NCBI GenBank assembly: GCA_021613535.1
Contig: CP075496.1
Coordinates: 992,001 to 1,056,000 of the forward strand
DNA from: Adineta vaga
Lineage: Eukaryota > Animalia > Rotifera
Length of the DNA: 64,000 nt
Direction: 5' to 3'
Part shown: piece by piece, positions 3,405 through 43,634 of the stretch
How the letters are laid out: each line of letters starts with the position of its first letter
How positions within the stretch are numbered: the stretch's first letter is position 1
Translations under genes and position numbers: made by a program
The notes under the pieces: model-generated
What the model was told of the DNA's origin: nothing
The model's database searches: none
The model's input: the letters and a program-made list of their open reading frames with translations, nothing else

Positions 3405-3962
3405 GTATAACCATTTCCTATGCACTAATAAATTATTCCAGGCTCTCTCTGTTTAGTATCGTCATTCGATGTTTTTAAATATTAACAAATCATATTTGTC
3501 GGAGAATATTTTTTCATTTATTTGCAACAGTAAATGAACAAAAGAAAATATAAAGATACATGAGAATGAAGACTAATTGCTAGACTATATACTTGTAAAC
3601 ATGAAAAGAATTAAATTATTTATTTATTTATAGAAATTTCAGAAGAAACAAAATCAGAAGAATTAATGATCATTTCGTAAGACATACCAGCATGTCGAGC
3701 AGCTTTTAAAGCTTCATTTGCTAAAGAGCATGGAAAAGATAAATTTTCACGTGATAATTCAAAGGTTTATTCGGCTAAAATTAAACAAAAAAGACTATTA
3801 ATAATTCATAGTGGAGAAAAAGTGATTTATTTATGTAATTGTCTAGTGCGTTTAACACCATCAACAACTTTTAGTGAAGCGGTATCACATGCAGCACTAG
3901 CTGTATCGCTAACCTAAAACGATACACATACAATACATGAATTACAACGACAAATAGACAAG
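3405..3962 (-). pseudogene. Deletion-riddled copy of the LEA gene and its 3' flank
   Basis: Colinear matches to 5700-7075 (e.g. cataccagcatgtcgagcagcttttaaagcttcatt; aacctaaaacgatacacatacaatacatgaattacaacga), with most exons deleted. Confidence 0.85.
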
Positions 3963-5692: not shown

Positions 5693-6041
5693 TATTTAAT
5701 CATTCTCTGTGCAAAAATAAATTATTGAAGGCTCTCACTTTTCTCTCTCTATCTCTTGTCATTGCAACGAATAACAAATTGTATTTGTTGAAGAATGTCT
5801 TTTCATTTATTTGGAACAGTAAATGAACAAAAAAAAACAGAAAGAGAGAAAATTGTTTTCTTCTATACATATCGAGCGAGATTATCAAATACAAAATAAG
5901 ACGAAAAAAAAATCATGACGTTGCTTGAATAAAATACGACTAGTTTTGAAAGAAAAATCGACATCACAAAAAAATGAGAATGAACACGAATTGCTAGACT
6001 ATATAGTTGTAAACACGAATAGAATTGAATTATTTATTTAT

Positions 6042-25200: not shown

Positions 25201-28200
25201 ACATAGAAAGAAAGAGTAAATTCCCCCTAGTTTGAACGAATGGAAAGGGAATAGTTGAGTGATTTCTTTTTCTTTTTCTTCTTAATTCTTTTTTGTTTTG
25301 ATTGCCTATGAGAATATATTAATCTCTCATACAAGAAAATTAACATTTTTTAGAATAGTGACAGAAAGTATTTACCGGTAAATCATCAAGATCAAGTGTA
25401 TCCATAAATTTCGAATCCCAAGTCATATTTGAATCTGATGGTGCTGATTTAACTTTATTAATCATATTACCATTTTGTAATTCACTTTGAAGATTATCAC
25501 ATTTTTGTTCTAATCGATGCATTTCAATAACTAATCGCTGTCTTTGTTGTCTTTCTGCAGTTAATTCTTCTTCCAATTGTTTCATGCGTGTTGTTGATAA
25601 ATCTTGTGTTGATAAATCTCCACGTAGTTGTTCTTCTAATTTTTGAATATCTTTGTTTTTCTGTTCAATTTCATTTTCTAATTGCGTTATTAAATCGGTA
25701 TTTTTCAAAATAATTTCGTCTTTTGTTTGTTTAGTTTGAATTAAATCCGATCGAATCGATGAATTTTCGGTTTTTAAACGTTCATTTTCTAATCGAAGTC
25801 TAAAAAACACAACAAATTACTTATAGGAAAAGAAAAGTCAAATCTTACTGTTGAATTTCTTCTTCGAGATTCGTTTGTTTTTTCAAATTTTGTTTTAATT
25901 CTTTATTTTTCGTTTTTAATTGTTCAAAATCTTTTTTCAAATTCTCCAATTCTTGTTCTTTATTAGTTAAACGTTCATTATCACGTTTTTGTTCATCAAT
26001 TTTATGTTGTAAAGAAATAATTTTATTTTCTAAACCTTTATTCATTTGTTTTTGATGTTCAATTGAACGTTGTTCAACACGAAGTTTTTTCACTTCTTGA
26101 CAAGCTTCACGTCGACGTTGATGTGATTGTAAAAGAATAATTGCACGTTGAAATGTCACAAATCTTTGTCGAGCAATCCACATACGTATGGATGATTGAA
26201 GAACAAGAACACTTCGTTCTAACATTCTTTGTTGAAGATTTTTTCGAATTAAATAACCTCGACAATGTGATTGAATATCAATTAAAATAATTCGAAGTTT
26301 TTCAAAACGACGTGCTGCAATTTGTCGACGCCATAATGATTGAAATAATGTTACAGCACGTGTACGACGAATATCTTCGGCATGTTTTCTTGCTAAATAT
26401 CTTCGTGATAAACATTGTAATGCTAATGTTGTTCGTCGTATCTTTAAATAACGTTTACGTGCATAATAAGTTCGATAAGTTGTTTGAATTTTAATAATAC
26501 AAGCACGAAGTTTTTCCGAACGTAATTTTTCTAAATAAGCAACTTGTCCGGCACGAAAGAAGATTTTTGTATTGCCAAATTGATATTTATCAGGATCAGA
26601 AATAAGATTTTTTAGAATATTTTCACATGTTCGACGGTAATTCGTTCGATCAATCAATGCTGAACGTGTTAATAAACGATAACGAACAAAAAAATCATGA
26701 TAACTCCAACGTGATGGATAACCAGCAGCACTTATACGAACAGTTTCTAAAACACCACAAGCACGTAATTGTTGAACTGCACGACGAGGTTCAAATCTAT
26801 GAAGAAATTCAATTTTGATTAATTCAACAAAAACAAAGACAACTTACGTAAATGAAGCTTTAGCATCATTCGGTTTTATACAACGAACATAATGAGGTTC
26901 AGTCGAATTCAATGCAGTCATTAAACTTGTTAAAGATTCTCGAAACTATTGAGAGAAAAAAAATGAAATGAATCAATTGTATTAAAACAAAAAGATTTTC
27001 AGGATAAGAAGGATTTAAAGTGCTCTCAGACATAGAATGAAGGAATTCGTGTTTAGAAAAAACCAAACAAAGAGGATATACGAAAACCAACCTGTGAACC
27101 AAGTGAATATCTCTACAATGATTTTGTTTTCTTTATTAAACTTTCGAATTTATATGAATCGAAACATTCTTACTTGAGATCCCACAGTTTTCTTTCTTTG
27201 TGCTTGAGTTTTCGACGTCGCTTGTAAAGTTCCTGTTTTTTGTACTTGATAAGATTTCTTTGATGCTGCATTTTTCATCCCATCATCTTCTTCCATAAAT
27301 AATTGAACAACAAATTCGAACTAAATAAATTCTTATCGAAAAAACAAATAATTTCATTTCATTACGAAATCTTACTTCACTTTCTTTTAACATTTTTAAT
27401 TGATCTTCAAGAACGGTATCACGATTCTTTTCTAAAAATCCTTCAATAGAATATTCAACTTTTTCAGCGAAATGATTGATTATAAACGTTGTATGAGCTG
27501 TTAATTTTTTCGTAGAAAAATCCGCATGTTTCCCATGTTGAGTAACTAATTTTCTATGCCAATTTTCATCCGAACCTTTCGGCATCTATTAAAAAACTTT
27601 CTTTAGTTTGAACAAAAAAGAAAAAAGAAGATCAAGTTTCTCAAACAAACTTTGCATTCTTCATCTAATAAATCTAAGATTCCTAATTTATTTTCGATTA
27701 AATCAATACACGGTTGATTATCATAGAATTGAATAAATGACCAAGTGATTTCTTCTTTCATATATTCTTCTTGTTCAAGTTTAAACACATGCTAAAATAA
27801 AACAAAGAATATTCAAATTTTTTCGACAAAAAATTTTACCTGACAGAATTGTTGTTGTAATTTTTCATTGGCATAATTTATACAAAATTGTTCGAAACTA
27901 TTTATTTCAAATGTTTCAAAACTAAAATAAAATAAATTTCAAAAAAATAAAACAAAGTCTTTTTTTATTCAAACATTAAATTTACCCATAAATATCTAAA
28001 ACACCAATAAATGATTGTCGTTGTCCAATATATTCTAAAGATTTATTTATTTCATCAACAATCCATCCAAATAATTGCGAATAAATATGTTTTGCAAGAG
28101 CATCTCGAGCAAATAGCGCCTGAAAAAGAAACAGCTCATTTTCTTCTGAGAATATTCAAGATATTTCATTACTTGATTTAGAGTTAACGTTGTATTCACA

Positions 28201-30078
28201 ACTTCTACACCTGTTTTTATTCTCTTATTACATAACCATGTTCTCATTCGATTTTCATCCAATTTTAAAAGTGAACAAAATATTGAAAATGATTTATCCG
28301 ATTCTTTGACATACGATGTTTCACCTTCACCTTCATGAATAATGACATTTCCCAGATGGAGAATGGCTGATAATAAACGAAATATGGACAGTTGAACTTT
28401 ATTCTCAATACCTATTCAGAAGAAGAAAAAAAAGAAACACTAATAAAAGAAAACGAGTAATTCAAACAAACCAAGAAGAGTTAATGCTTCACGCGTTTCG
28501 AGGAATTGTTGAGCATCATTAACACCTTTGATTGTTATGGCATTTCCTTCAGATGTATAACGAAATTGATCAGCCGATACTAAATTTGATAGAGTAGTAT
28601 GAGTGAGGTTTCCTTATTTAGTGTCTCAAAAGTGATTGACTATTTTTTGTCACTTACATAAAGCAAGCGATTTCATTTCAGATTGATTCACTTGTGTACA
28701 TAATTGATAAAAGATATGATAATTTCTTTCATCTGGTGCTTGATAAATAACTCTAGAAAATGAAAAAACAACAACAACAATATGATTCTAAATATCTTTG
28801 AGAAAACAAACAAACCTTGATTTTTCTAATAAATAAGTTCTCATCGATGCACCACAAATATGATTTCTTAAAAAACCAATTTCAATATATTTTCCAAATC
28901 GTGATGAATTATCATTTCGTATTGTTTTCGCATTGCCAATTGCCTATGATTTCAATCACATCTATTCCTGTTCTTCTTTATTATTTCAAATAACTTACTT
29001 CCATAATTGGACTTGACGCTAAAACTTTCTTTTCAATTTGTGTTTCTTCTAATAAACCACCAACATTTGCAAAATATCTCATGGCATATTTTGCGCTAAC
29101 AGTTTTTCCTGCTCCTGATTCTCCTGAAACGATAATGGATTGATTTTTTGAGAAATTCACCATGGATTGATACGCTAATTCTGCTGTTGCAAATATATGT
29201 GGTTCTAATAGTTGAACATCTTGATCACGATACAATTGAATCGTATCATTGCCATATATAGATAAAGACTCATAGGGATTTATAGCCACTAAGACAATAC
29301 CACATTTTGTATAGATCTGAGATTTGTTAAAACGAGATTCAAGATTATATAAAACTAAATAAAAGAAATTGGGTTAGAAAAACTTTCGTACTTTGAGAAG
29401 AATTTACCTTCAGGTTCATTTAAATAAGAAAGTGCAGTAAGATCTTTTTGACCGATGAGAATCTCGGGATTACGCAATGGTGGAAGATCAGAATCGGATT
29501 TGATTGGAATAATTTCCTAATTATATTTCATTAATATTCAAAACTGTCTCGTTTTCTTCAACTTACATTTGCACCTTCTGCCGATATTACTTCTAGTTGT
29601 CCTTTACCATCATAATTACCCGCGACAGTCACGGCACGCCAAACATATTCACGATCTGGTAACCAAACTCGTGCACCCTGAAAAGAAACAAACAATCATC
29701 TTTTATTTCTTCACTTCTCAAAAAAACCAACAACATAAAGCAGCTTCCTTCTATTGCATTATTGTATCTTCACTATCTATGCAATAAAATCATGCAATAT
29801 CGACTAAATATAGCACAGCACACATGAAATATTCGCACAAACTATACAAACTTGAAAAGAATTGATTGACTCGACTAATAGAAAAGAAAAGAAATGAAGC
29901 AAACAACAACGAATATCAACTGAAATTTCATTCTTTCGAGAAAAATAAGAAAAAAACCTTAAGCATGAGATTAATATCTTCTTAGAACTGGAAATAGATG
30001 ACAACATTAATAAACAAGACAAGAATAAATCTGATTACAAAAACAACATACCTTTGTATATAATTCTCGAACAGACAT
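22227..30078 (-). CDS. MYO5: Unconventional myosin V (motor, IQ repeats, coiled coil, dilute domain), multi-exon
   Basis: Start MSVRELYTK|G; P-loop [26 protein letters not shown]; [21 protein letters not shown] and [16 protein letters not shown] motifs; IQ repeats; dilute-domain motifs; ends LHLDFLSLV*. Confidence 0.95.
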
Positions 30079-30260
30079 TATTTTAAATACATTTATATTG
30101 CCAAGACATCCAATGATTACAAACGATACGTCGAAACAATGACAGAGATTTTAATCTAGAAAATATCTAAGCTGTTTTTTTTTTCATTCAATACTATTTA
30201 TACAAAATATATCTGACGATTTTTATTCAAAGAAAATCACAGAGAATTGATTAACAAAGA

Positions 30261-30947
30261 TTATTTTTTTCTTTTTCTATTCATTGCATCATTAAGAACA
30301 TTGGTAAGATCATTTGTCATTCCTTGAATTTTAGGTGGTAACATTTGTTTTGTTTCATTATTAACTAGTCGATCATAATCTCGAAATGCTGCTTGTCCCA
30401 ATAATAATAAAATTTTCTCTTGTCTTTCAAATTTTCCTGTTTGTTGTTTCATACTTTCATGATGATGATGATCATTTGATATGACTAAATGAAAAGCTGC
30501 ATCCATTATTGAACGAAATCGTTGTTGATATGTTTGTAAAAGTGTAATGGCAACTTGTCGTTTTTCATCGAAATTTAATTCCAATAAATGACGTCCTTGA
30601 CGATAGAAATGTGGAGCTTGTTTAGCTAAATCAACAACTGTTGCATCAGCAGCAAAGATCTGTCGTTGAATACGTGAATAGATCAATGGTAGTTCAGGTA
30701 ATGTTGCAAATCGTGTTTTACAATTACAAATGGAATAAATCATCCAATAAGGAAGTTCAAGTTTCGTATTGGCTGTTAATGATGAAAGATTTTGTTCATG
30801 TTTCTGATCTTTTTTCTCATCATCTAATGCTGTTGATGAAGATGATGATTCGAGAAAACCTAATTTTGGTATATCGACAAGCAGTTGACAACGAATACGT
30901 TCTTGTGTTGATAAAATATCATCAATAGAGAAATAATCTTCATACAT
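30261..30947 (-). CDS. GINS3: DNA replication complex GINS subunit PSF3, copy 1 (intronless, 228 aa)
   Basis: MYEDYFSIDDILSTQERIRCQLLVDIPKLGFLE...KLELPYWM...ADATVVDLAKQAPHFYRQG...TYQQRFRSIMD is the Psf3 pattern. Confidence 0.9.
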   Translation of the reverse strand: MYEDYFSIDDILSTQERIRCQLLVDIPKLGFLESSSSSTALDDEKKDQKHEQNLSSLTANTKLELPYWMIYSICNCKTRFATLPELPLIYSRIQRQIFAADATVVDLAKQAPHFYRQGRHLLELNFDEKRQVAITLLQTYQQRFRSIMDAAFHLVISNDHHHHESMKQQTGKFERQEKILLLLGQAAFRDYDRLVNNETKQMLPPKIQGMTNDLTNVLNDAMNRKRKK

Positions 30948-31103
30948 CTGAAAAACAAAATCAAAAATGTTTTTTATGCGATAGATGAGTCTACTAGAAA
31001 TCTGACAACGGTGATGAATTATGTTTAACTCATCCGATATTTTCAATACATTCGAATGAAGAAGGATATGAATTAAGATAGACGTAATTTTCCTTCACTA
31101 TTA

Positions 31104-31647
31104 TTACTTACCTTCATTTGATTCATCGTCACTAGAAGAAGAATCGTCGCCACTATAAGAAGAATCATCGTCTTTGTCGACCTTTTCTACGATGTTGGAT
31201 GTTATGGATTCAGATAACCAATTGAAAAACATTCTTGTTGATTCAATTATTTCAATTTCATCTTTTTTTTCTTCTAGATTTAGTCTTCTTAACCAGTTCC
31301 AAAACATCTCTTCACTTACACAATCTTCATCATATAATATGTGGAACAGTTTACAAGCTAAACCTACAGGCAGACGAAGATCGTAAATGGACAAGGCTTT
31401 AATAATTAAAAATCTCTCACAACACTTTACCATGTGGATGTTTTAATTGAATTATAAATTTTTGTATGGCACACAGAACTTGAATTTCTTTTTCATTATC
31501 ATCATGAAGAATAGATTTTAACATACGAGCTCTATGTCGTGCGTTATCTTGATCAATTGCCATATCTATTGTATCAGAACCAATGAGACATGACTGTAAA
31601 TAAGATAATACAATAGTTTGTATGTAATGTTGATCGAATGGATTCAT
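31104..31647 (-). CDS. eIF4G-type W2 (HEAT-3) domain, two exons (intron 31364-31430); stand-alone or relic C-terminus of the HNH gene
   Basis: EKEIQVLCAIQKFIIQLKHPHG|LACKLFHILYDEDCVSEEMFWNW...IIESTRMFFNWLSES plus an acidic tail resembles the eIF4G AA-boxes (LYDEDVVKEDAFYSW...FFKWLREA). Confidence 0.7.
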
Positions 31648-31809
31648 TTTCTAAAATAAACAAAGATATCTTATAGGATCGAGAGTAGATTTAAGAATAT
31701 TTGCCTCGAGTATCTTTTCATTTATTCTGATAGAAATACATGATATTAAAGCTGCAAATGATAAACTACCAATCTCTATCAACGCGATGATCTTTTTCAA
31801 CTGATGCAT

Positions 31810-32925
31810 TCAGTATCGTATTGATTTCAGTACTGAATTAGAATTAGAATACAATGCACTTACTTCTCGAATATATTGTAAAAGTTTTTCTTCGTGTTTG
31901 TTCGAATCTATTGGTTGTTCATTGATCATTCTAAATAATTCAATCAAATTTGCTAAAGACGATGGTGTTGACTGTGGTAAAGGAACATCTTGTACAGTAG
32001 TAGTTGATGATAATGGACATACATCAACAACTTGTGTAAAAGATGTGAGAGATTTTGTAACTGTTAATGATGTTGTGCTTGATGTTTCCAATGGCATTTC
32101 TTGTCCAACAGGATTGTCCATGAGCCATTGATAAACATTCGCATGTGTATCTTTATCTGAACTTGTTCTAAATAAATCTTGAATAAAATTTGTTAAATTA
32201 AAAAAATCTGCATCATTTAATGAAAACTCTTTTTGTTTTTCCTTGGCTTTTTCGAAAGCACTATGACAATGTAATGCCAACATTCGACGATATGGTCGAT
32301 TATGATTTTGGAAAAGTAAAGGTGCTTGATGAATATTTCCGAAAGTATGAGGCGATACTGATGTAATTCTTTGTGACGATATTGTTTTATTTAGCAAAAA
32401 CATTTTTAATTGACTATTTTCTTCAATAATTGTTACATATTTTTTATCAAATGCATCTTTAATTGCTGTTACTAATCTCAAGCAATTTCTTGGATTATCA
32501 ATATTGGATGAACTTAAACCAAAATATTTTAAACCATATGATCTTGATTTTGGATATATATGTGCAGTCTTCACATGTTGAGCTTTTTTGTCAATAAGCC
32601 CGAGTATCATGCATTGATTTCTTTTTAAGTTGTAAAAGGTCATGACAGCTTCTCTCAACATTCTTCTTGTGTAGTGTGTGGAATGAGTTGACGATAAATC
32701 ACTCCATGGATCTGTTATTGTTTTGAGTAATTGATTATCAATATTTGGAACTAAATAAAAAGTAAAAAAATTATTATTAAATTATTTTTATTATTTTTAT
32801 TATTTACGTTGTTTGTGAAAGTTTTGAAGATGTCCGCATAAGCAAGTGTAATTTCCCGTGTTACAGAATGAAATACAAGGATTATCAGGATCTTTACATT
32901 TAAAACAAATATTTGTAAATGACAT
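31810..32925 (-). CDS. Cys/His finger + HNH endonuclease (HNH_2, Crinkler/CR-effector-like), 2 exons, ~352 aa
   Basis: Exon 1 (32808-32925) encodes MSFTNICFKCKDPDNPCISFCNTGNYTCLCGHLQNFH; 57-bp intron; exon 2 encodes CMILG...TAHIYPKS...IDNPRNCLRL...AFD...RPYRRMLALH. Confidence 0.8.
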
Positions 32926-33704
32926 GATTGATCTGAAAAAATCAAAATAGAAAATCATTTAACTAAATGAACTACAGTGCATAAGGACCTATGAATAATC
33001 CTGGATGTACAAGAGAAATATTTTATTTCCTTAACTAGGAATAATGGTAGAGCGATACCGCAATGAAATTCAACATATTCAGCGCAAAATGACCATAAAA
33101 AATCGAAAGATGTTTTCATATATGACACGAGAAGTTATCAGGAAATTAAAACAATATTATCTGAAAACAAATCATTATTATTTTCTAATTCGGCTTACTG
33201 ATGTATTCTATCATGACGATATTTTACAACTTAATCTCATAATTCTCGCAAAATTAGGACTACTCTTCATTGGCTATTTCAGTTCTTTCTTTAAAGTAAT
33301 TATTAACCTGAATCCTGAACAGAAACGAAACATAAAACAAAAGATTAACCTTTTTAATTCTTCTAATAAATTATAACGATTTATTACTAATGGTACATTT
33401 ATCATTGAAAATAGCCGAAATAAAGGTAGAAGACTAGTTTACCAGTTGTTTGTTTCGTTGGAGGATATGGTATTATAAAATAATCTCGTTCAAAGTGTAA
33501 AAACAGTGCTTGAAACGGAACTTCTCGAGTCACAAAAATAGTTTCATATTTAGAAAATCATGCATTATAAATGAAGCATAGCGTAACACACATAAGATAT
33601 TTATGTTTAAATGAGCTCGAAAATACTTTCTTAAATCAATCAAGATGCAAAACAGTGCACATCGTCGCAAATTAATTTTTATTATTAGAAAATGTTAAAT
33701 ATTC

Positions 33705-33745
33705 GACTAATACATATCTTTGAATATAAAATCTTGAACAGAAGT
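33705..33745 (-). pseudogene. Decayed copy of MYO5 exon 1
   Basis: acatatctttgaatataaaatcttgaacaga versus acatacctttgtatataattctcgaacaga (30046-30075), in the expected position downstream of PSF3 copy 2. Confidence 0.6.
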
Positions 33746-33946
33746 TTTTCTTCTTACTTATTCTGGATAATTAACCAAGCCGTTCATTGATCATAAAAAA
33801 ACGCGTCAGATGTACAAAACAATGACACATAATTATATCTACAAAATAATCAACAAGTTAATTTTTACTATTGCATCAAATTTTTCTACAAAATATATCT
33901 GACGATTTTTATTCGACGAAAATTACAGAGAATTGATTAACAAAGA

Positions 33947-34633
33947 TTATTTTTTCCTTTTTCTATTCATTGCATCATTAAGAACATTGGTAAGATCATT
34001 TGTCATTCCTTGAATTTTAGGTGGTAACATTTGTTTTGTTTCATTATTAACTAGTCGATCATAATCTCGAAATGCTGCTTGTCCCAATAATAATAAAATT
34101 TTCTCTTGTCTTTCAAATTTTCCTGTTTGTTGTTTCATACTTTCATGATGATGATGATCATTTGATATGACTAAATGAAAAGCTGCATCCATTATTGAAC
34201 GAAATCGTTGTTGATATGTTTGTAAAAGTGTAATGGCAACTTGTCGTTTTTCATCGAAATTTAATTCCAATAAATGACGTCCTTGACGATAGAAATGTGG
34301 AGCTTGTTTAGCTAAATCAACAACTGTTGCATCAGCAGCAAAGATCTGTCGTTGAATACGTGAATAGATCAATGGTAGTTCAGGTAATGTTGCAAATCGT
34401 GTTTTACAATTACAAATGGAATAAATCATCCAATAAGGAAGTTCAAGTTTCGTATTGGCTGTTAATGATGAAAGATTTTGTTCATGTTTCTGATCTTTTT
34501 TCTCATCATCTAATGCTGTTGATGATGATGATGATTCGAGAAAACCTAATTTTGGTATATCGACAAGCAGTTGACAACGAATACGTTCTTGTGTTGATAA
34601 AATATCATCAATAGAAAAATAATCTTCATACAT
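33947..34633 (-). CDS. GINS3: GINS subunit PSF3, copy 2 (same protein as copy 1)
   Basis: 687 bp, same length as copy 1; only ~3 synonymous differences seen by eye. Confidence 0.9.
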   Translation of the reverse strand: MYEDYFSIDDILSTQERIRCQLLVDIPKLGFLESSSSSTALDDEKKDQKHEQNLSSLTANTKLELPYWMIYSICNCKTRFATLPELPLIYSRIQRQIFAADATVVDLAKQAPHFYRQGRHLLELNFDEKRQVAITLLQTYQQRFRSIMDAAFHLVISNDHHHHESMKQQTGKFERQEKILLLLGQAAFRDYDRLVNNETKQMLPPKIQGMTNDLTNVLNDAMNRKRKK

Positions 34634-34666
34634 CTGAAAAACAAAAACAAAAACAAGTGTTTTATT
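34634..34666 (-). promoter_or_regulatory. Candidate intercistronic signal: AATAAA overlapping the NOM1 stop, T-rich tract, TTTCAG acceptor directly before the PSF3 ATG
   Basis: Minus strand reads GAA TAA aacacttgtttttgtttttgtttttcag ATG; the spacer is 28 bp. Confidence 0.65.
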
Positions 34667-37600
34667 CTTTTGATAGTTCATTAATGGCTATTTGACAACG
34701 ACGATGAACTAAATCAGAATAAATCGATTTCTTTGAAATAAAATGAGAAAGAAATAATCTGAGAGCATCTCTAACAAATTTATAATTTTTTGTTAATGGA
34801 AATTGAAAGATATTTTGTAACGATGCATCGTCGGTGTTTTCAAATAATTTCACAAACAATTCAACTAGAAATGTTCGTGCTGATGTTGTTAATTCGATGA
34901 AATTGAAATTCTATTAAAGAAAAAAAATGAAGAATTTATTTTAATTATATTATTCTTCACTCATATTCATAAAACTAAACGATCGACTATTGCCGAAAGT
35001 TATTCTATTCATTTGTAAAGTGTAACTTACTTTAAATATATTCAATGTAATTGATTTTGATATTAATAATTGTGATAATACTGTACCAAAATTTGCTAAT
35101 TGGTGATCATTGAGTAATGAAAGATCTTTAAATCGATCCCATGTATGATATTGTAAGGACATCTAAAGAATTTTATGAGAAAATAGGGTTTTTTTTCTTC
35201 AGAAGAAATGTCTTTACTTGAAAACGACGATCATATGCAGCGAATCGTTGTAAAATCAGTGTATAATATGGATTATAGGTTTTTTCATGTAAAGAACAAT
35301 GAATTGTAACCTTGATTGTAAATAAAAACAATCATAAAATTAAATAGAAAATGACACTTACATGAATGATTTCTCGTTCTTGAATTTTATTTAAATTCAA
35401 TTTATGAAGTTTTTCCACTGCATCATCACAATCCTATATAAGAAGAAAAATCAGATATATGTATATATAAAATATTCATTTATTCAATTCAATCATTTTC
35501 ATAACAATATTCTCTCGAGAAGAAAAACTTATTTTTAGTCTCATATAACAAGCTGAAGGACGAATTCCACACGTTTTTATAATAGAAAAATAAACCCTAA
35601 ATACTTCTTTCTTTTCATCAATAGAAAGAGAACAGTACAACGGCTTTTTTCTCCAGCAAGGATATATCCTCGTTTCCTTTTCCTATTCTATCGTTTTATT
35701 TATTATCTACTTTGTATTTATTTGTTTTCATTGTGTCAATACAACAAGTGCATTAGTCTCTGACGTTCATTCTCTTTCTTCTCATATACTGAGTAGTCTT
35801 TAAAGTACTAAGTTTCAATAATACAATGCAATTGAACTAGAGATATATCAAACCCGCGTCTCTCATTCTTTTTCTGATTTGTCTTCTTTATTTTATTCAA
35901 ATTTTATAAAATCTATGTGAATAATATCGAATTACCTCACTTGTCAATAATGTTCCAAATATTAATCGTCTAATATCCGTATTCATATGTTGTTGTTTTG
36001 CTAATTTTCGAATATTTTCATTAAATAATGGTTCAGTTTTATCTTTTTTATTCTTTTGTTTATCTTGAGAATTTTGTTTTTGCCATGCAGAACCAACGAT
36101 CCACCATCGTCCTTGTTCTTTAGCATTTAGAAAATCTTCTAATCCAACATTTAACATATTTGCTTGTTGTACTGTTTTATCTTTAACTAAATTTCGATAA
36201 ATTTTTCTCAATCGATCAATTCGATCTGGTTCAAATCCACCGGGTAATTTTCTAACGTCATTATTTTTCAAACTTTTAATTGTATCCATCATAAATTCTA
36301 ATCGTTTTGATGATGATGATATTAATGTTGATGATGAACATATCGTGCGTAGTTCTTGAAGGAAATTCTTCAATTCTAGTGGATTATCTTTTCGTAAAAA
36401 GAATCCACTGGTTTTTAATAATAGAAGAATTAATTCTAAACGTTTTTCATTGATTTGTTCAATAGTTAATATGTATCGAGCAAGATCAAATAGAATTTTT
36501 CCATTGATCATAGAAAATGCATATGTATACGCAAAAAATTGAATTAAATTATCCGGAATTTTGTTTGAAACATCATCATGAATATGTTCGACGAAAAGTT
36601 GTAAGAAATTTTCGAGTAAATATGATCCTATTTCTAAACCAATATTAGCATGAAGAAGACAAGCAAGTAATGCATATTCAGCAAGAAAATTTTCACCAGT
36701 TAAAGAAAGAGATGATATAAGACTATCATGATATAATTGATATAAACATAAATTAACTGTTGCACGAGATTGAGTTCGATAAATTGTTTCAATTTCAATT
36801 AAAATTGAAGATAAATTCTTTTCACTTAAACGATTTATTTGACCTTGAAGACGACGTTTTAATTCAAGTAAAGAATTATCATCAGATGTATTCAATTTTT
36901 GTCGAAGTGCAGGAGGAATGTACGTTGTACCTAAAATCATTCAATTCAATATCAAATTTCAAATCTTTCACATGAAGTACTCTCTTATTTTTATATTTTA
37001 AATAGTATTCATTTAGTTCTGTAGAAAATTTCAAAGCAGAACTTTAGATACAACAATTAGCTCGAAAGATTAAAAAGAAAACCAAAGTTATAGTCAAAAT
37101 ACTAAGACCGTTATTTATTCTGCTGCACTCATTATGTCTTTCATAAAATTGAATTGTTTTTATAAGAAAACATATTCTTACTTGAATTACTTTTGACAAC
37201 ATTGCCCTTCGTATCAACTGTTCGTCCATAAATATCTTCTTTTAACGTTGGAGTCTCTTCTTCATCTTCTCCTCTTTCTCCATCTTCTTCCCCATCTCCA
37301 TCTTCGTCTTCGTCAAAATCTTCTTCATCGAAATCTTCGTCTTCATCATCATCATCATCAATCATTTTCGTTTGAATATCTTCATTGAATTTCACTAACG
37401 ATGTTTTTTTCTTTGAAATTTTCTCTTCAGATTTCTCCTTATCATTCGCTAATTTAACTTTTTCTTTTTGTTTTTTTGCTAACCATTGTTGATCTTCATC
37501 TTCTTCATCATACCAAGCATTTCCTTCTCCATCACCTAAACAAAACAAACGAAAGATTATAAAAACAAATAAATCGTCATTTACCTTCAGCCTGCATAAT

Positions 37601-38116
37601 TTCTTTTCTTCGATCTTTATCACAAAAATCGAGTAAGAAATCCAAACCATCATCGACAAAACCACGTAAATATGTTTTCCGATTCGATTTAATTCCTAAA
37701 AGTTTTTCTAATTTTTTAATATGACCATCTTCCATTTCATTATCTTCTAATAAATGTCTTCGATGATGTTCTTTCGCAGCCTATTGAAATACAAATCGAA
37801 ACAACAACAAAAAATATTTTCAATTCAAACCTGTTCATCAACTGTTAATTCTTCTGAATCATCTTTTGATTCTTTCTTCTTTTTCTTTTTCTTCTTTTTC
37901 TTCTTATTCGAATTTTCCTCTTGCTCAAATGAAGGTGCTAATGCATCGATAGATTTTGGTATCTAAATAGAAAATATTTGATTGAAAAGTTCAATATAAA
38001 GAAGAAGAACGAACTTGATCTCGATGATGCCATGCATTTCGTTTAGCTTTAACTAATTTTCTTTCTAATTGTCGACGTTGTTTTCTTGGAAGAAGAGTAT
38101 TTTGGTTTTCTTTCAT
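34662..38116 (-). CDS. NOM1: Nucleolar MIF4G domain-containing protein 1 (NOM1/Sgd1), multi-exon
   Basis: Basic N-terminus MKENQNTLLPRKQRRQLERKL, acidic tract, EDIYGR, YIPPALR, MIF4G (LQGQINRLSEKN), GRWWIVGSAW and the MA3 start MNTDIRRLIF. Confidence 0.9.
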
Positions 38117-38192
38117 CTAAAATAGATTTTATTTATTATTTAAGACAAAAATATTCTACATAAATCATCCAACTATTTCATCTGGTTCAAGT
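38117..38192 (-). promoter_or_regulatory. Duplicated PLEKHA8 3' tail + 48-bp spacer with AATAAA and TTTTAG acceptor abutting the NOM1 ATG
   Basis: Minus strand reads ...GAA ATA GTT GGA TGA tttatgtagaatatttttgtcttaaataataaataaaatctattttag ATG; nearly identical to 41432-41510. Confidence 0.7.
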
Positions 38193-38204
38193 TTATGAAT
38201 GATA

Positions 38205-38938
38205 ACCAGATCGAGATGAACAATTGGTAAACTCGTTCCGAACAAAAGAACGAATAAAAGCATGTTCTAAACGTATTCGCAACGCGTTCTATAGACGTTC
38301 GATAGATGCCGTCCGTTCGGAACGCATTTTGTGTTATTTTTTTCTTCTTTCGACAGGTCGAGAATATGACACGATAATGACAAATATATAAATTAAAAGT
38401 ATATATGAAAGAATTAAATGATGGTATAATTCAAAAAATATTTTTATTTCAGATAAATTATAGCTTAATCATTTTTAGTCTTAGTTGTGTACATTTAGAT
38501 TGGATTTAATTTGTGAATGAATCGATTATCGTTTACATCATCATGTGATCGAAATGCTACGTCATTTTTTACCAGTATTCTTTGCTGATAGGTATTTTAT
38601 ACTATGACCAATATACCTGTAAGTGAAACTTTTTTTCTCTTATGTTTATCTTTAGAAAGGAATATGTCGTTTTTTTCTTGTATTTAATTGTAATCTTAAA
38701 CTAAAATCGTCATTTTTTTGTAATGCGAACTTCTTAGAATTGTATCTCGTATTTTTGTCTTTCTCTATATCGTAGATGTGTTCATGATTATTATCATGAG
38801 TTTTGTCAATTTAAATTATTTGTATGACTCATGTTCCAATTAAATCTGAATAAACCAACTAAAGGGTTCTGCACTATTTTAAGAACGTGTTCGAAACAAA
38901 TATCGAACGCATTTTTTCATCGTTCGTCTCGACCTGAG
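38205..38938. mobile_element. Degenerate MITE-like element (CAGGTCGAG-type TIRs)
   Basis: ccagatcgagatgaacaattg versus the reverse complement of catcgttcgtctcgacctga; subterminal gaacg/cgttc repeats. Confidence 0.45.
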
Positions 38939-38997
38939 ATATGATTTATCTATTGCACTTACAGAAACTTTTTGTGCATATTTAATGATATATTCGA

Positions 38998-40324
38998 TTA
39001 TTTCTTTTGTCTTTTGTTCACAAACTTTTTCAATATTAAAATGTTCATCGTTGATTGTGATTGAACACTACTAATATCTGTACCAGGTACTTCACCAATG
39101 AGTTTCCAAACAGGAGTAGAAAAACGATTGACTATTTCGAGTACACATGATATTCTAAACAGAACAGAGAAACAATCAATAAAGAATGAAGGAAGTGAAA
39201 CGAACGACATACCCATTTCAAATATTATCGAGATTTAAAATTTGCTGTTTCTGTGCTAAATCAAATAAATGTCCTACGAAAGCAGCTGTTTGTGGTTCTA
39301 ATTTCAAAACATTTATTATTAGTTCACTGACGAGTATACAGTTTGATCCAGTAAGAGAACATTAGATAAATCTTGAACAGCTACCTAAATAATAATATTA
39401 AAAAAACGAAAAATGTTGCAAAATCATATTTTTATACGAACTTTTATGCGATTACTGATGGATATATGGGATGAATATTCAGTATATTGTCCGATAAACG
39501 CATAAATAAATGTTGATGTTGTTTTTGATTGTGCTAATTGTGTGTCAAGTCCAATTGGATTATTATTTAACTATTGTTTAACATTTTCACGTTTATGTGC
39601 ATCCAATGATATACCTAATATATGGTCGACATAAAATCTGAAATTACCCAGGTCTTCATTACTTAATAAAAACTCTTGTCATTTCAGTCTTGCATAATTA
39701 AATGAACTGTAACATTGTAGAGCCAAAGGCGATGAAAAGGTCGTTGTTCATTATTAAAATTTAACGATACTCCATGAATACTTCCAAACGTATGAAGAGA
39801 GACCGATGTAATTTGCTTCGATAAAAGTGTTCTGTTTAATAATTCACCATTTTTCTCGATTATGGTTAAATTATTTTGTTGATTGAACGCAAGAACCATA
39901 CATCGATTTTTGTCCAAATTGTAGAAATTCATTACGATCCAGGACAATGATTTCGGCAGCTGTATCCGTGCAATTCCGACAGGAACCTGCAGGAAAATGA
40001 AAGCAGGAATGAACGGATCCTGTGACCAGTTTTGCTCGGTTCCTTCCGGTTCCGAAGAAAGCTGAATGAATCCTACGACCGGATCTGGCCCGCACTTCTC
40101 GACATGGGGGATTCTCGCAATGTTTTTCAACAAGTGACGAAATGTACTTTGATATAAACAAAGAAAAAAGCAAATATATGATACAACTTTCTTTTCAACT
40201 TATTTTCACAATGAAGATTCTTTTTGTGCCTACACAAGCATATATAATTACCAACGTCGCAGAAAGTAAAGCCTGTTTCTTTAGCATTAATATACTCGTA
40301 ACAAATATTGATAGACTCCGTCAT
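38998..40324 (-). pseudogene. Second, decayed copy of the finger-HNH gene, with eIF4G-type MA3 exons
   Basis: MTESINICYEY...FCDVGNYICLCRH matches exon 1 of the intact copy. VMNFYNLDKNRCMVL..TIIEKNG..SKQITSVSLHTFGSIH..RPFHRL matches exon 2, with the AHI/N core deleted. Downstream exons AVQDL...VGHLFDLAQKQQILN..NG|ISCVLEIVN...PVWKLIGEV resemble eIF4G MA3. Frameshifts and stops present. Confidence 0.75.
39938..40108. mobile_element. GC-rich MITE-like insertion in the HNH pseudogene
   Basis: Abrupt GC-rich block absent from the intact paralog. Its ends ccaggac.../...cgacatggg and ggatcc/tccg-rich interior resemble the 19300-19536 MITE. Confidence 0.5.
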
Positions 40325-40949
40325 TTATCTGAAAAAATTAAAATAGACAATATCATTAAACAAAATGAATTATGCAAAGAATATAAAAATAAATCATTTC
40401 TAAATAAGAACAATTGTAACAATTGTGTAACAAGACGATAATGAGAGAAAAGAATTACTGCAGAGTATTTACAACGATCAATAAAAATCCAACTCATCTG
40501 CACGACAATGACGAGTATTAGGAAACACAACACAAGCAATATTATTTGAAAAAAGAAACGAGAAATTTAGTTACTATCATTCCATTATCATTTGTTGATT
40601 CAGATTGCAAACGTATCTGATCACGAGGGTATTTTCGTTTTTTGTTTCATTGGAGGATATTGTGTCATATAATGAATTGGCTTAAATTGGGATAATAATG
40701 CTGAAGGCAGAGTTTATTGGGTAATGATTGATGACTGAATATGAAACCTTTCATTATACTTTAAATCACAAAAATTGAAAAGATTTCTCACAGATTCTCG
40801 TAAATTTGACTAAATATACATCACTAAATCTTGATATTTGTTAGGATTCATCAGCACTAAAAAGTCTGATTTTTCACCTTGCACTCATTTGAACATAACT
40901 TATATGATTTTAGGTGAAGTTTTATCGAAAAGACGTGAATGAGAAAATG

Positions 40950-41431
40950 TTTTCTTACTTGAATTAGTTTTGACAACGTTGCCGTTAGCATCAACTGTTC
41001 GTCCATAAATATTTTCTTTTAATATTGACGTTTCTTCTTCATCATACCAAGCAATTCCTCGTCCATCACCTATTTTAAATACAAAAAAAAATTCAGATTA
41101 AGTAATCTAAATTCTATTTCATTACCTTCTGCATGTGAAATTTCTTTTCTTCGATCTTTATCACAAAAATTCAATAAAGAATCTAACACATCATCAATAA
41201 AATCACGTAAGTATGTTTTACAAACTGGTTTAATTCCTAAAAGTTTCTCTAATTTTTTAATATTTGCATCTTCAATGATGTTCTTTCACTGCCTAACCTA
41301 ACATCAGTTTCTGAAGAAAAAAATCAAACTTTTTTTTGTTCATGCCATGCATTTCGTTTCGCTTTATCTAATTTTCTTTCTAATTGTCGACGTTGTTTTC
41401 TCAAAAGAAGAATATTTTGATTTTCTTTCGT
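40950..41431 (-). pseudogene. Decayed copy of the NOM1 5' exons (start mutated to ACG, internal deletions, stop)
   Basis: Colinear with 37170-38116 (catcaactgttcgtccataaatat; tttcttttcttcgatctttatcacaaaa; ttttctttctaattgtcgacgttgttttc). Confidence 0.85.
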
Positions 41432-41481
41432 CTAAAATAGATTTTATTTATTATTTAAGACATAAAAATATTCTACATAAA

Positions 41482-43634
41482 TCATCCAACTATTTCATCT
41501 GATTCAAGTTCATTTTCGAGATAAAATTCTGTTATTTTATGTACAAGATTATTAATATAAGAACTATGTTCGAGCATTTCATGTAAAATCTAAAAGAATA
41601 AAAATAAAAAATATTGTTTGGTTAAGAAACAAGTCATTTACTTGTTGTTCGAAAAGAACTTCTCGTGCATCATTTGAATCAACTGAAAGTGATACAAGAA
41701 AATCTTCATTGTATGGAACTGATCGAAGGGCAATCTAAAATGATTATATGAATTTAGAGTTTAGATGAAAAAAGAAAAGATTTACGGAAAATGCGCCGCG
41801 TGTGATCCATCCATGATAACGTTTTAATGTTTGTCCATATGCTTTGTTCATTGCATCTTCAACACTTCGATCACCTTGACCGAATTCATGAAGAAAACAA
41901 GATAAAAATGCAATACTCCTAAAATCAAGATGAATTATCTTAAGGAAATTCAGAGTTTGTCATAAGAGATCAGATTTCAATTCCTTGTAATTCAATAGGC
42001 AACTCTTATAACAAGATCAATCTTTTTCAATTGATAAATTGCTTCTTTTTGTTCAAATAGAAGATTTCACGCGAAAAAAATAAGTCATACTGGTCTTTAT
42101 AAATTACTGTCCAATTTGATTTCTCTCTCCTCTTCTAAAATTGATGATTCTAAATGAAATGTTACGAATAAATACCTTTTTAGCCAAAGAAGTGCATCAG
42201 TTGCTGAATTTTTTTCTTTTGTGGTTTTTGCGTTTATTTCATCATTCAAAATTGAAAATAATGTTTGGAATTTATTTGGATCATTACTAATTTTTCTTCG
42301 TAATTTCTATTCAAATCAAATGTCAATCTTTATTTCAAGATAAAGTACAACTTACGCTAATATTTCCATTAGCATCTGCACGTAGTGGAGTGAATGTTGT
42401 ACTATTAAATTTGTCTAGAAATGAATTTGTTATTGAAAAGTTTGAAAAACCAAAGAATTGATATACCGATAAGAGTAAGATATTGTTCACATGTTGAAAG
42501 AAAAAGTTCAGAATGAATATCTTTGAATGGTAAACAACTCAACTGGGCGAATCTAAAATCAATTCAAATTAGAAAAAGAAGTTAAATATCATTTAAATTA
42601 CGTGAATGGAAGTTGAGTAAAGAATGTCTTATAAACAATTTGTTTTGGTAAAAATGTTGTTGTTGTTGGTAAATTCGATGATCTAGAAGAGAAAGAAATA
42701 TATAATCTTCAATAAATTTAACAAGTATTAATCAACACAAACATAGGTGTTTCAAATTCATTAAAAGATTTTCGAAGTATTGTTGTCCCATCAGGGAGTT
42801 TTGGTGGAGATGGAGAAAGTAGAAGTAACGATTGAGATGAATCACCAGTTGCTAATTTAACACATTCATCAAGTGTATGAATAAATGCATCGCATGTAAC
42901 ACTTAACATTGACGAGGATTCATCTAATTTCTTGACGATAAAACGACAAACAAAATTATTTTCATGAAAAAAAAGACCCTAAAATAAATATACTTTAACA
43001 TCTGGAATAGGCGTATCATTTGCTATTGATTTAATTGCATGAATACCTTGAGTAAGAACTGTTTCGTAAAGACGTAATTCTTGTACTTTAATTTTAAGTT
43101 CACGATCAATTGCAGTTAGATGTGAAACTAGAAACAAAGTCAAATGAAACTATGTCAAATGAGAGAATATTAATTTACTTAATGTTGATGATGTATTTGT
43201 ATTATTATGATTACTGTTTGAATTAGATGTTGTAGTTGATTTTGTTCCACGAGATTTACATGTACCCAAAGAAACAAGCCAACGTTGCCGTTCAGGTTGA
43301 GATTTTGCTTTCAAACAAAAAAATTGTTCACCTGGAATAATCAAATCGAAACGAAGGGGATCATTTGGATGAGCTAAATTCATACAAAATTATATTCATT
43401 TATTTATTCTATGCAAATTTTATCAACCTTTCACTTCACAAGCAAGTACTAAACATGAACCTTTACATCCTTCATGAATCAATTCCTTTGATTTATAATA
43501 TGAAAGAACACCTGTTTCATTCAAAACAAAATAACGTGGTTGCCATCCTGAAAAGAAAAGTTTTATTAAACATTGTTATAATGAATTATTTTACCATTAT
43601 AATAATTAGTCCATTTATAAAGTATACCCTCCAT
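41482..43634 (-). CDS. PLEKHA8: PH + GLTP domain protein FAPP2/PLEKHA8, multi-exon
   Basis: MEGILYKWTNYYNG|WQPRYFVL..GVLSYY (FAPP PH domain), ERQRWLVSLGTCK, and GLTP motifs ATDALLWLKR and AYGQTLKRYHGWI; ends ELESDEIVG*. Confidence 0.9.

Follow-up and report, generated by a model that had tools for sequence, protein, structure and literature searches.

[quoted passage not shown]

Three of the four HNH-type nuclease genes in the Adineta vaga genome lie directly upstream of an essential housekeeping gene, and each of these three is bracketed by two copies of host DNA, 0.4–1.1 kb in length, with the duplicated stretch beginning about 100 bases 5' of the host ATG. This arrangement looks like the scar of an old, unusual insertion process rather than an assembly error or an active transposon. 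Two of the genes, cassettes 1 and 2, reside at one locus within the window, the 64,000-nucleotide stretch of contig CP075496.1 (positions 992,001 to 1,056,000) that was analyzed here and to which the coordinates below refer. Self-BLAST, a repeat search and alignment all give the layout target copy, cassette, target copy (T-C-T) for both cassettes. In transcription order, the features are:

41482–41925, minus strand: PLEKHA8-like gene, 3' end, with a GLTP domain (stop codon 41484–41482; tblastx against the Rotaria sordida GLTP gene in L031)
40925–41513, minus strand: duplication 2, right copy; real PLEKHA8 tail and spacer, then NOM1 5' pseudo-fragment
38197–40924, minus strand: cassette 2; decayed cassette-2-type finger/HNH gene
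37150–38196, minus strand: duplication 2, left copy; PLEKHA8-tail pseudo-fragment (~38196–38160) and spacer, then real NOM1 5' part
34662–38116, minus strand: NOM1-like gene with a MIF4G domain (Pfam, 8.5e-21)
33645–34770, minus strand: duplication 1, right copy; real NOM1 tail, intact PSF3 coding sequence (34633–33947), MYO5 exon-1 pseudo-fragment
31086–33644, minus strand: cassette 1; expressed finger-HNH_2-W2 gene (Pfam, RNA contigs, tblastn with P0001 and P0004)
30948–31111, minus strand: terminal intron of the cassette-1 transcript (RNA-contig joint 30947/31112)
29980–31085, minus strand: duplication 1, left copy; NOM1-tail pseudo-fragment, intact PSF3 coding sequence (30947–30261 including the stop), spacer, real MYO5 exon 1 (30078–30052)
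24058–30078, minus strand: MYO5-like myosin gene, 5' and central part (aligned to R. sordida L017)

The original prediction that two direct duplications bracket the two cassettes was borne out by self-BLAST and the repeat search, and the pseudo-fragments of the NOM1 5' part, MYO5 exon 1 and the NOM1 tail that it placed beside the cassettes were located by BLAST and alignment. In duplication 1, 30134–31021 matches 33817–34711 at 94% over 895 nt, and weaker homology in the alignment reaches ~29980–31085 and ~33645–34770, so as to include the NOM1-tail pseudo-fragment that lies 5' of the left PSF3 copy. The MYO5 exon-1 pseudo-fragment (33743–33712), downstream of the right PSF3 copy, has lost its ATG and is accompanied by ~65 nt of intron-1-like sequence. 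Both copies of PSF3 are intact and specify the same protein; their coding sequences differ at 3 of 687 nt, as against 60–70% identity in their flanks. Gene conversion limited to the coding sequence keeps them nearly identical, and the high identity of the PSF3 repeats reflects conversion and not a recent event. Duplication 2 (37162–38196 versus 40939–41513 by self-BLAST, three pieces at 77–89%) takes in ~35 nt from the end of PLEKHA8, the spacer and ~950 nt of NOM1; internal deletions are found in the right copy, which measures 575 nt versus 1035 nt for the left one. In the right copy, the NOM1 pseudo-fragment has ACG (41431) in place of the start codon, and the real NOM1 ATG (38116) is in the left copy, whose end point falls ~20 nt inside a NOM1 intron. 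NOM1 is single-copy in the A. vaga genome, and its introns at 34911–35030, 35163–35217 and 35309–35359 are confirmed by RNA contigs. Branch lengths derived from identities are 0.061 for A. vaga NOM1, 0.130 for the A. vaga pseudo-copy and 0.113 for R. sordida NOM1; judging by sequence divergence, the apparent age of duplication 2 does not exceed that of the species split.

Cassette 1 is a transcribed, spliced gene, as evidenced by RNA contigs, and encodes a Cys/His finger followed by an HNH_2 domain (Pfam, 8e-8; 32.4 bits against a curated cut-off of 21) and an eIF4G-type W2 domain (8e-10). A conserved upstream block (~33560–33450) and the acceptor TTTTTTCAG (32941–32933) precede exon 1, which encodes the finger (ATG 32925 to ~32806); exon 2 (HNH_2) spans 32750–31864, exon 3 spans 31650–31429 and exon 4 (W2) spans 31361–31112, with the unspliced frame reaching a stop at 31104. 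The last donor, G|GTAAGT at 31112/31111, joins the PSF3 ATG (30947) of the downstream copy, and this joint, 30947/31112 (CT..AC on the plus strand), is present in runs X14 (side 251) and X9. The body of the terminal intron is the NOM1-tail pseudo-fragment and its acceptor immediately precedes the PSF3 ATG; in the spliced transcript the nuclease frame terminates in NEDV and a stop codon overlapping that ATG, and the cassette 1 gene is without a 3' end of its own. Splicing onto PSF3 fits the proposed hitch-hiking of the nuclease gene on the transcript of an essential gene. The catalytic His and Asn of the HNH_2 domain are retained. Since K replaces an E that is near-invariant (60 of 63 relatives), the A. 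vaga cassette-1 nuclease may nevertheless be inactive.

In cassette 2, homologous finger and HNH exons on the same minus strand were recovered by tblastx: the finger exon (40324–40205) is followed by HNH remnants (39953–39436), in which a 49-aa deletion removes the catalytic core and two stops interrupt the frame, and by two further exons (39337–39212 and ~39170–38963) with one stop and a 13-nt deletion; intron 1 contains a dispersed repeat (39940–40086). In both cassettes TTTTTTCAG sits 4–7 nt ahead of the ATG (32925 and 40324), and the upstream motif ATATCCTCCAA[CT]GAAACA, found at 33468 and, within a conserved block at ~40740–40630, at 40660, recurs in Rotaria sp. Silwood2. The common finger-HNH gene, acceptor, upstream blocks and host orientation that had been noted are thus confirmed by tblastx and motif positions. 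The cassettes are not the close copies that they had been taken for: identity is only 30–56% at the amino acid level, alignable DNA amounts to just 73 nt, and cassette 2 is devoid of the HNH core and of any detectable W2 part. In the tree they are ancient paralogs that split before the genera did (clade supports 81/91 and 95/94), and cassette 2 is a decayed pseudogene of such a paralog. Repeat searches found no terminal inverted repeats at the cassettes and Pfam gave no transposase or integrase match among the region's ten longest ORFs, in agreement with the initial reading.

The 100.8 Mb A. vaga genome contains four HNH_2 loci, namely three intact domains and the decayed cassette 2. The third locus (C6:12234518-12235570, chromosome 6) is bracketed, in host orientation, by a direct duplication of the 5' part of NOC2, an unrelated essential gene (~370 nt in the alignment; BLAST matches of 327 and 342 nt, 76%), in the order BRCT gene, NOC2 5' pseudo-fragment, coiled-coil/HNH_2 gene, the ~370 nt once more, and intact single-copy NOC2. 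No flanking duplication was found at the fourth locus (C2:12484487). The expectation that other HNH copies would also be bracketed by long host duplications therefore holds for the NOC2 locus and fails for the fourth locus and for the cassette-2-type loci of Rotaria.

The empty site anticipated in related species was found: PLEKHA8, NOM1, PSF3 and MYO5 are contiguous and cassette-free at L031 in R. sordida and at L033 in a further bdelloid, with spacers of ~115 nt (PLEKHA8 to NOM1), ~6 nt (NOM1 to PSF3) and ~230 nt (PSF3 to MYO5). Comparison with this contiguous cluster supports both cassettes as insertions. The order cassette 1, PSF3, MYO5 is common to A. vaga and R. sordida L016/L017; the left A. 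vaga copy clusters with L016 (11 versus 3 versus 2 informative sites; 81% versus 71% identity), and the MYO5 5' region, introns included, aligns contiguously with L017 (80.6% over 742 nt). Because R. sordida shares this order, the insertion of cassette 1 is old, and the supposition that the HNH gene is not a conserved syntenic resident does not hold: cassette 1 was already next to PSF3-MYO5 when the R. sordida lineage branched off and has stayed there. Two diverged versions of the PSF3-MYO5 region exist in R. sordida: the functional, empty L031, and L016/L017, in which cassette 1 accompanies a pseudogenized PSF3 and a pseudogenized MYO5 with stops in its exon 2. The cassette-2-type units of R. 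socialis and Rotaria sp. Silwood2 are 82% identical, introns included, and have unrelated flanks and neighbors, homology stopping sharply at the unit edges; no long flanking repeats were found at these copies. Among named matches, the finger + HNH_2 + W2 and coiled-coil + HNH_2 architectures occur in bdelloids only.

The explanation that we favor, with a confidence somewhat short of an even chance, is that nuclease genes of this bdelloid family were inserted in old events, with a long target duplication made as part of each insertion. The family would be small and specific to bdelloids, its members self-contained genes for HNH_2 (His-Me finger) nucleases that were inserted as DNA, with introns, into the 5' region of essential, apparently trans-spliced housekeeping genes, duplicating 0.4–1.1 kb of target in direct orientation, from ~80–140 nt upstream of the host ATG to the insertion point. 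Since the target would be duplicated from before the host ATG, the upstream neighbor would retain its 3' end, and downstream of the cassette an entire host gene would be re-formed. A possible route starts from a break with a wide stagger, the single-stranded ends being filled in and then joined to the gene that is coming in. In experiments, duplications made by fill-in measure tens of bases, versus ~1 kb here. Duplication by fill-in at staggered breaks has a precedent (PMC8355091). Under this scenario, cassette 1 would have been upstream of PSF3-MYO5 since before the Adineta/R. sordida split, conserved and expressed, and cassette 2 would be a later arrival of the older paralog that has since decayed. 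Contig depths of 39.1, 56.6 and 19.1 (X1) and 33.4, 50.7 and 17.3 (X6), in a 2:3:1 ratio, suggest that cassette 1 is hemizygous: one haplotype of the sequenced clone appears to be without it, likely through recombination between the PSF3 repeats. There is no empty and filled site pair of equal age that would display the insertion directly, and with only four loci the family gives no sign of recent or current movement. The idea of a nuclease element with long target duplications at gene junctions is partly supported: the duplications and a formerly mobile, low-copy nuclease gene stand, the mechanism is a proposed one, and no sign of current activity was seen. For cassette 1, a large ancient duplication with later trimming may be an alternative origin because R. 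sordida has the second, cassette-free cluster L031, which may be an ohnolog, an older paralog or an ortholog of the A. vaga cluster.

A rather doubtful alternative is that small tandem duplications of gene junctions came first and that relocating nuclease genes, mobile or moved by repair and not creating duplications, landed in the dead junction as the only non-lethal place in very compact essential-gene clusters. The clusters are indeed compact (spacers of 6–230 nt when empty; the A. vaga NOM1 stop is 26 nt from the PSF3 ATG), the downstream host copies begin 80–140 nt before the host ATG, roughly what a trans-spliced gene would need, and local duplications unrelated to HNH genes occur (window 3408–3960 versus 5697–7074). 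However, the three sites would each need a rare prior duplication and an insertion falling precisely on its junction, and ample harmless intergenic DNA is available elsewhere, for example, at the fourth locus. The background rate of local duplications, based on ~160 kb of other A. vaga DNA, corresponds to only one other dispersed direct-repeat pair. It would also be unexplained why all three cases fall in one four-member family.

It is similarly unlikely, in our estimate, that no mobility was involved and that the HNH genes are old residents, the locus representing the leftovers of segmental or whole-genome duplication of the cluster with reciprocal gene loss, be it triplication followed by loss or fusion of two paralogous clusters. 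The contrast between R. sordida L031 and L016/L017 fits such a history, as do the functional A. vaga MYO5 being of the L017 type, i.e., reciprocal retention, and the presence of exactly one functional copy of every host gene at the locus except PSF3. At least five precisely placed deletions would be required, however, and such a history would explain neither why NOC2, on a different chromosome, independently shows the pattern nor how the unit came to change places between Rotaria species. Triplication with reciprocal loss, offered originally as the alternative, is disfavored because the cassettes are ancient paralogs that diverged before the genera, while duplication 2 does not seem to predate the species split.

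A still-active selfish element, either a homing-type nuclease gene or a spreading transposon, is very improbable. The cassette 1 gene is intact and transcribed, and HNH_2 and CR-HNH nucleases are known from restriction systems and pathogen effectors (PMC5714182). Furthermore, cassette 1 seems to be present on one haplotype only. Yet a functional homing gene would convert the empty homolog instead of remaining hemizygous; occupation of the site predates the divergence from R. sordida, just four loci exist in the entire genome, and the nuclease carries the E-to-K change. Collapsed or mis-joined haplotypes are hardly credible even though the PSF3 repeat collapses in short-read graphs (760-nt contig) and the reference shows a diploid genome in haploid form, because short-read contigs of two independent studies span cassette 1 and cross both junctions without mismatch (a 2986-nt contig covering 30931–33916 with 0 differences in two DNA runs), an RNA contig links the cassette to the left PSF3 copy, R. 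sordida has the same cassette-PSF3-MYO5 order, and repeat flanks are just 60–70% identical, unlike haplotypes.

Among known systems, the free-standing homing endonuclease genes of T-even phages (HNH-type Mob, GIY-YIG Seg) resemble the cassettes in standing alone without a recombinase or terminal repeats, in being wedged between conserved essential genes in host orientation, in being present in some genomes and absent from the same site in relatives, and in the HNH (His-Me finger) catalytic domain (PMC5714182). In contrast to the cassettes with their 0.4–1.1 kb flanking duplicates, T-even homing leaves no target duplication, and the cassette gene is an apparently hemizygous animal nuclear gene with introns and an eIF4G-type W2 fusion. 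Fill-in of staggered breaks (Pol alpha-primase/CST at 3' overhangs) likewise yields a direct duplication between offset nicks, and extra DNA may join at the junction with no need for an element-encoded recombinase; those duplications are small and tandem (PMC8355091), whereas the A. vaga ones are 370–1100 nt long and flank a 1.8–2.7 kb gene, and repair alone leaves the link to one gene family unexplained. Campbell-type (ends-in) integration of a circle by homologous recombination gives the same target, insert, target product in direct orientation, and repeat-repeat recombination, restoring the empty site, would account for the apparent cassette-free haplotype; but the circle must already carry the target, and this route cannot account for new, unrelated sites (PSF3/MYO5, NOM1, NOC2). 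The HNH_2 family itself (PF13391), which the cassette matches above the cut-off, comprises the type II restriction enzymes AlwI, BbrI and HphI and the CR-HNH effector domains of eukaryotic pathogens. The bdelloid nucleases differ from these enzymes in their finger/W2 or coiled-coil architecture, and the finger-W2 subfamily is without the usual His after LRL; the best structural matches, albeit weak, are to the HNH restriction enzymes VcaM4I (probability 0.96) and TagI.

Each of the two nuclease cassettes in the window lies between direct duplications of host sequence within the cluster PLEKHA8-NOM1-PSF3-MYO5 (order on the minus strand; left and right below denote lower and higher coordinates). 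Both duplications were recovered by self-BLAST and repeat search:

31086..33644, minus strand: cassette 1, an expressed finger-HNH_2-W2 gene
38197..40924, minus strand: cassette 2, a decayed paralogue
30134-31021 and 33817-34711, direct: duplication 1, containing PSF3, around cassette 1; 94% identity over 895 nt
37162-38196 and 40939-41513, direct: duplication 2, PLEKHA8 tail and NOM1, around cassette 2; three pieces, 77-89% identity, right copy shortened through deletions
33743-33712: MYO5 exon-1 pseudo-fragment, ATG absent, downstream of the right PSF3 copy

Faint similarity extends past both sides of duplication 1, into a NOM1-tail pseudo-fragment upstream of the left PSF3 copy and into the MYO5 exon-1 pseudo-fragment, and the target-cassette-target layout of the original prediction, with both duplications and both pseudo-fragments, is therefore correct. 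Duplication 2 starts ~35 nt before the PLEKHA8 stop and ends ~20 nt inside a NOM1 intron; the NOM1 start codon in its right copy reads ACG. The two PSF3 coding sequences show 3 differences in 687 nt and encode identical proteins, and outside them the identity falls to 60-70% within ~70 nt upstream and ~75 nt downstream. This sharp mosaic points to old repeats that have undergone gene conversion rather than to a recent duplication. Duplication 2 looks, from sequence comparison, younger than the cassette-1 event, although gene conversion could mimic a young age; the three-taxon branches derived from identities measure 0.061 (A. vaga NOM1), 0.130 (its pseudo-copy) and 0.113 (NOM1 of Rotaria sordida).

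The same topology recurs elsewhere in the A. vaga assembly (100.8 Mb in six contigs, ~30% G+C). A Pfam six-frame scan of the genome detected exactly three intact HNH_2 domains (34.3, 29.2 and 28.4 bits), namely cassette 1, C6:12235061 and C2:12484487, and cassette 2 is a fourth, decayed locus. The gene on contig C6, which consists of a coiled-coil ORF and an HNH_2 ORF in host orientation and stops ~35 nt before the repeat, is enclosed by two ~370-nt copies (C6:12233485-12233811 and 12235617-12235958, 76% identity) of the beginning of NOC2, an essential gene unrelated to those in the window. In either copy, ~110 nt of upstream sequence precede exon 1, intron 1 and a portion of exon 2; only the downstream copy runs on into the intact, single-copy NOC2, the other being a dead fragment of that gene. 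Thus, three of the four HNH_2 loci share this topology at three unrelated essential genes, and at all three the downstream repeat begins 80-140 nt ahead of a host start codon with a splice acceptor immediately in front of it (TTTTCAG/ATG at PSF3, NOM1 and NOC2). The expectation that other HNH copies would be bracketed by host-gene duplications held at the C6 locus and failed at the C2 locus, where no flanking repeats were found, and at the Rotaria units of the cassette-2 type, which have no long flanking repeats. Chance association of HNH_2 loci with flanking repeats is unlikely because ~160 kb of other genome sequence, the basis of this rough estimate, contained a single unrelated dispersed direct-repeat pair. 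As a candidate ohnologous empty site within A. vaga we considered C3:4458k, which proved to hold only a PLEKHA8 paralogue; PSF3, NOM1 and NOC2 are each confined to a single locus.

We consider an assembly artefact unlikely; a single 2986-nt contig from DNA runs of two different studies matches 30931-33916 with 0 differences and crosses both cassette-1 junctions. In RNA-type contigs, cassette 1 is spliced as 32750-31864, 31650-31429 and 31361-31112, and a further GT..AG joint connects the donor G/GTAAGT at 31112, one base into the last codon of the cassette-1 gene, to 30947, the first base of the left PSF3 start codon (ATG), with the acceptor directly before that codon. The nuclease gene thus uses the NOM1-tail pseudo-fragment as its last intron. 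Its reading frame closes after two codons of the PSF3 exon (...NEDV-stop), the stop overlapping the PSF3 start (gATGTATGA), and the transcript continues through PSF3, which, given this cis-splicing onto its acceptor, is thus either a second cistron or the 3' UTR of the cassette-1 mRNA. One RNA contig extends from the NOM1 tail to PSF3, a contig over two genes being no proof of a single transcript.

Contig depth around cassette 1 in two DNA runs (X1; X6)
MYO5 side: 39.1; 33.4
Collapsed PSF3 (30201-30960): 56.6; 50.7
Cassette 1 (30931-33916): 19.1; 17.3
NOM1 side: 30; 26.9 (contigs with 8 and 18 heterozygous-looking differences)

The depths of flanks, collapsed PSF3 and cassette 1 stand at about 2:3:1 in both independent runs, and cassette 1 carries zero variants, compared with 0.7-1.6% differences in the adjoining NOM1 contig. 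This depth ratio together with the absence of variants suggests, as a reading of contig depth and not of a copy-number assay, that one haplotype alone carries cassette 1 and one of the PSF3 copies. A single clone would then offer testable material in two haplotypes, one seemingly with the cassette and one seemingly without it. In one X6 contig, 32916 is followed directly by 33673, so that 756 nt are missing between a point just within the start of the cassette-1 coding sequence and the border of duplication 1; with only 21 nt on its shorter side, this joint may reflect either a structural variant or an artefact.

The coding parts of cassette 1 are a Cys/His-rich exon, which begins at ATG 32925 preceded by TTTTTTCAG, an HNH_2 domain (PF13391; Pfam 8e-8, 32.4 bits against a gathering cut-off of 21), a linker and a W2 domain (PF02020; 7.7e-10 at 31104-31433) closest to the eIF4G1 C-terminus. 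The searches used single exons, with the Rotaria proteins P0001 and P0004 as full-length stand-ins; the W2 part of P0004 matches the eIF4G1 chain 6zmw_g at 1.1e-13, and an MA3 domain was not detected. The catalytic His (AHI, H63) is kept in 59 of 63 relatives and the Asn (PRN, N88) in 62 of 63, and cassette 1 has both. The acidic residue of the helix (IE.AFD), which is E in 60 of the 63 relatives and is retained in R. sordida and in the cassette-2-type proteins, is K in A. vaga cassette 1 (IKDAFD), at position 97 when exon 2 is numbered. By profile and by its His and Asn, cassette 1 is accordingly a predicted HNH_2/His-Me finger nuclease in which the conserved acidic residue is replaced. An AlphaFold2 model (pLDDT 82) gave no Foldseek match at E <= 0.001; its weak matches include the HNH restriction enzymes VcaM4I (the best, E 7.6e-3, probability 0.96, TM 0.23) and TagI. 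HNH_2 nucleases are otherwise found in restriction enzymes and in effector domains of pathogens (PMC5714182), and full-text literature searches ('bdelloid' with 'HNH'; PF13391) returned no paper that describes these bdelloid genes in its title or abstract.

Cassette 2 is a pseudogene with stops, a 13-nt deletion and 49 missing residues of the HNH core; it yields no HNH_2 profile match because this core is deleted, and a W2 part is not recognisable in it. Its first intron contains a dispersed repeat (39940-40086) with copies of 74-85% identity at C1:732910, C2:15871829 and C2:15173304. The conserved stretch 38900-39450, considered as a candidate RNA gene, turned out to be two exons and a short intron of the cassette-2-type gene, and an Rfam scan of 29.5-42 kb gave no match. 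The two A. vaga cassettes and the Rotaria sp. Silwood2 gene have a conserved block of ~110 nt upstream of them, and within it an 18-nt motif, ATATCCTCCAA[CT]GAAACA (window 33468 and 40660; L029:6293, the Silwood2 locus), may be either part of a promoter or a 5' exon.

The closest named relatives of the window proteins are from bdelloid rotifers (Rotaria, Didymodactylos), and full-length cassette homologues occur in R. sordida (P0001), R. socialis (P0004, P0005) and Rotaria sp. Silwood2 (P0006). In the phylogenetic tree, for which the cassette 2 pseudogene was entered as two joined pieces with X at stops, A. vaga cassette 1 groups with R. sordida (support 81/91), and cassette 2 with R. socialis, Silwood2 and one metagenomic sequence (95/94). 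The two cassettes therefore split before these genera and did not arise from a single recent local duplication. The wider family comprises 537 clusters at E <= 0.001; among the ten top clusters looked up, nine are metagenomic and the other is from Paulinella micropora. Flanking repeats are absent around one distant relative, located on a 583-kb contig, and the 1.4-kb contig that carries the closest relative of the C6 gene offers no context.

The empty PLEKHA8-NOM1-PSF3-MYO5 site sought in related species was found: the four genes are contiguous and free of cassettes on one R. sordida contig (L031) and on another bdelloid contig (L033), so that both insertion sites exist in the empty state, and Didymodactylos has the same gene order with longer spacers. 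Two other R. sordida contigs (L016 and L017) show the order gene X, cassette-1-type gene, the 3' third to half of PSF3 (a pseudogene) and the 5' part of MYO5; L017 carries two in-frame stops in MYO5 exon 2 (4565-4678) and is without ~520 nt of the finger and the N-terminal part of HNH present in L016. The PSF3 remnant begins ~13 nt after the conserved donor site, which is consistent with a deletion in an A. vaga-like ancestor. Outside the conversion tract, the left A. vaga copy is nearest to L016 (81%, compared with 71% to L031; 11 of 16 informative sites), and the MYO5 5' region, introns included, forms a contiguous 80.6% alignment with L017 compared with fragments only for L031. The cassette-1 event is thus older than the split from this Rotaria lineage, and R. 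sordida shares the gene order around cassette 1. The right-hand copy cannot be assigned as the orthologue of the empty L031 from an unrooted quartet, which shows only that the duplication is older than the L016-lineage split; dS values of 0.33-0.62 and intron identities are too noisy to separate an ohnologue, an older paralogue and an orthologue of the right-hand copy for L031. Gene X was rejected as a cassette remnant, its A. vaga orthologues lying at C5:14580355-14580570 (85% aa) and C2:2742777-2742992 (82% aa); these two copies (dS ~0.70) served as the ohnologue yardstick.

Between R. socialis and Silwood2, the cassette-2-type unit with its introns is conserved at 82% identity over 5-11 kb, and the homology stops sharply ~110 nt upstream of a TATA-like box and ~570 nt past the W2 exon. 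The neighbouring genes differ between the two species; thus, on at least one occasion the unit moved as DNA, and a duplication is not always detectable. Fractionation of larger duplications around resident genes is a serious alternative explanation for the A. vaga loci, and on this conservative reading they still show that duplicated essential genes of a bdelloid have undergone reciprocal loss and conversion. Equally to be taken seriously is insertion into pre-existing tandem-duplication junctions, the sole harmless sites in such compact clusters; the NOM1 stop lies 26 nt from the PSF3 ATG, a very short spacing as in a putative SL trans-spliced operon.

The data speak most for rare, ancient events in which self-contained nuclease genes were inserted into 5' regions of essential genes, a long target duplication accompanying each. 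By analogy with fill-in at staggered breaks (PMC8355091), a widely staggered break would have been filled in at both ends and joined to the incoming gene. The hallmarks of class II transposons, a short target duplication of fixed length and many copies, are missing, with duplications of ~1100 nt (duplication 1), 1035 nt (duplication 2) and ~370 nt (C6) at four loci in all. The repeat search found no pair of terminal inverted repeats of at least 60 nt, and the short inverted pairs are AT-rich and chance-like, none connecting both ends in both cassettes. Among the longest cassette ORFs scanned, HNH_2 and W2 were the only domain matches and no recombinase domain was found. As to the filled and empty states of homing genes, relatives have empty clusters, and in A. 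vaga the comparison is one of contig depths. A currently active element is unlikely.

That bdelloid HNH_2 genes represent a new kind of eukaryotic mobile gene, a free-standing nuclease with a long target duplication and no transposase, is a tentative and rather doubtful proposal. Such a unit would consist of the nuclease gene with its own promoter and no terminator, and its point of entry, a widely staggered break, would lie in the first kilobase of a trans-spliced essential gene. In this way 0.4-1.1 kb of target would be duplicated and the host gene rebuilt behind the cassette. The host gene would become a downstream cistron and the 3' end of the cassette's own transcript; no transposase would be needed, and loss would be hard except by exact recombination between the repeats.

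If insertion itself makes kilobase-scale duplications, it follows a mode of integration that is not known for any class of eukaryotic element, and would be a route by which a foreign-looking nuclease gene enters an extremely compact essential-gene cluster without harm to the host, then borrowing the splice acceptor and 3' end of a host gene. The pattern suits the bdelloids, a lineage whose genome evolution centres on breakage and repair of DNA and on gene conversion. The locus also offers an expressed nuclease fused to a translation-factor domain and a gene-conversion tract with sharp edges.

Two further repeats were noted in the window. A local direct duplication (3408-3960 and 5697-7074; 75-90%, 2.3-3.1 kb apart), which we take as background only, has no HNH gene between its copies, and nearby ORFs resemble small secreted proteins. 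The other, at 13100-14006, is a tandem array with a period of ~142 nt and copies of 88-90% identity within an F-box/LRR gene.
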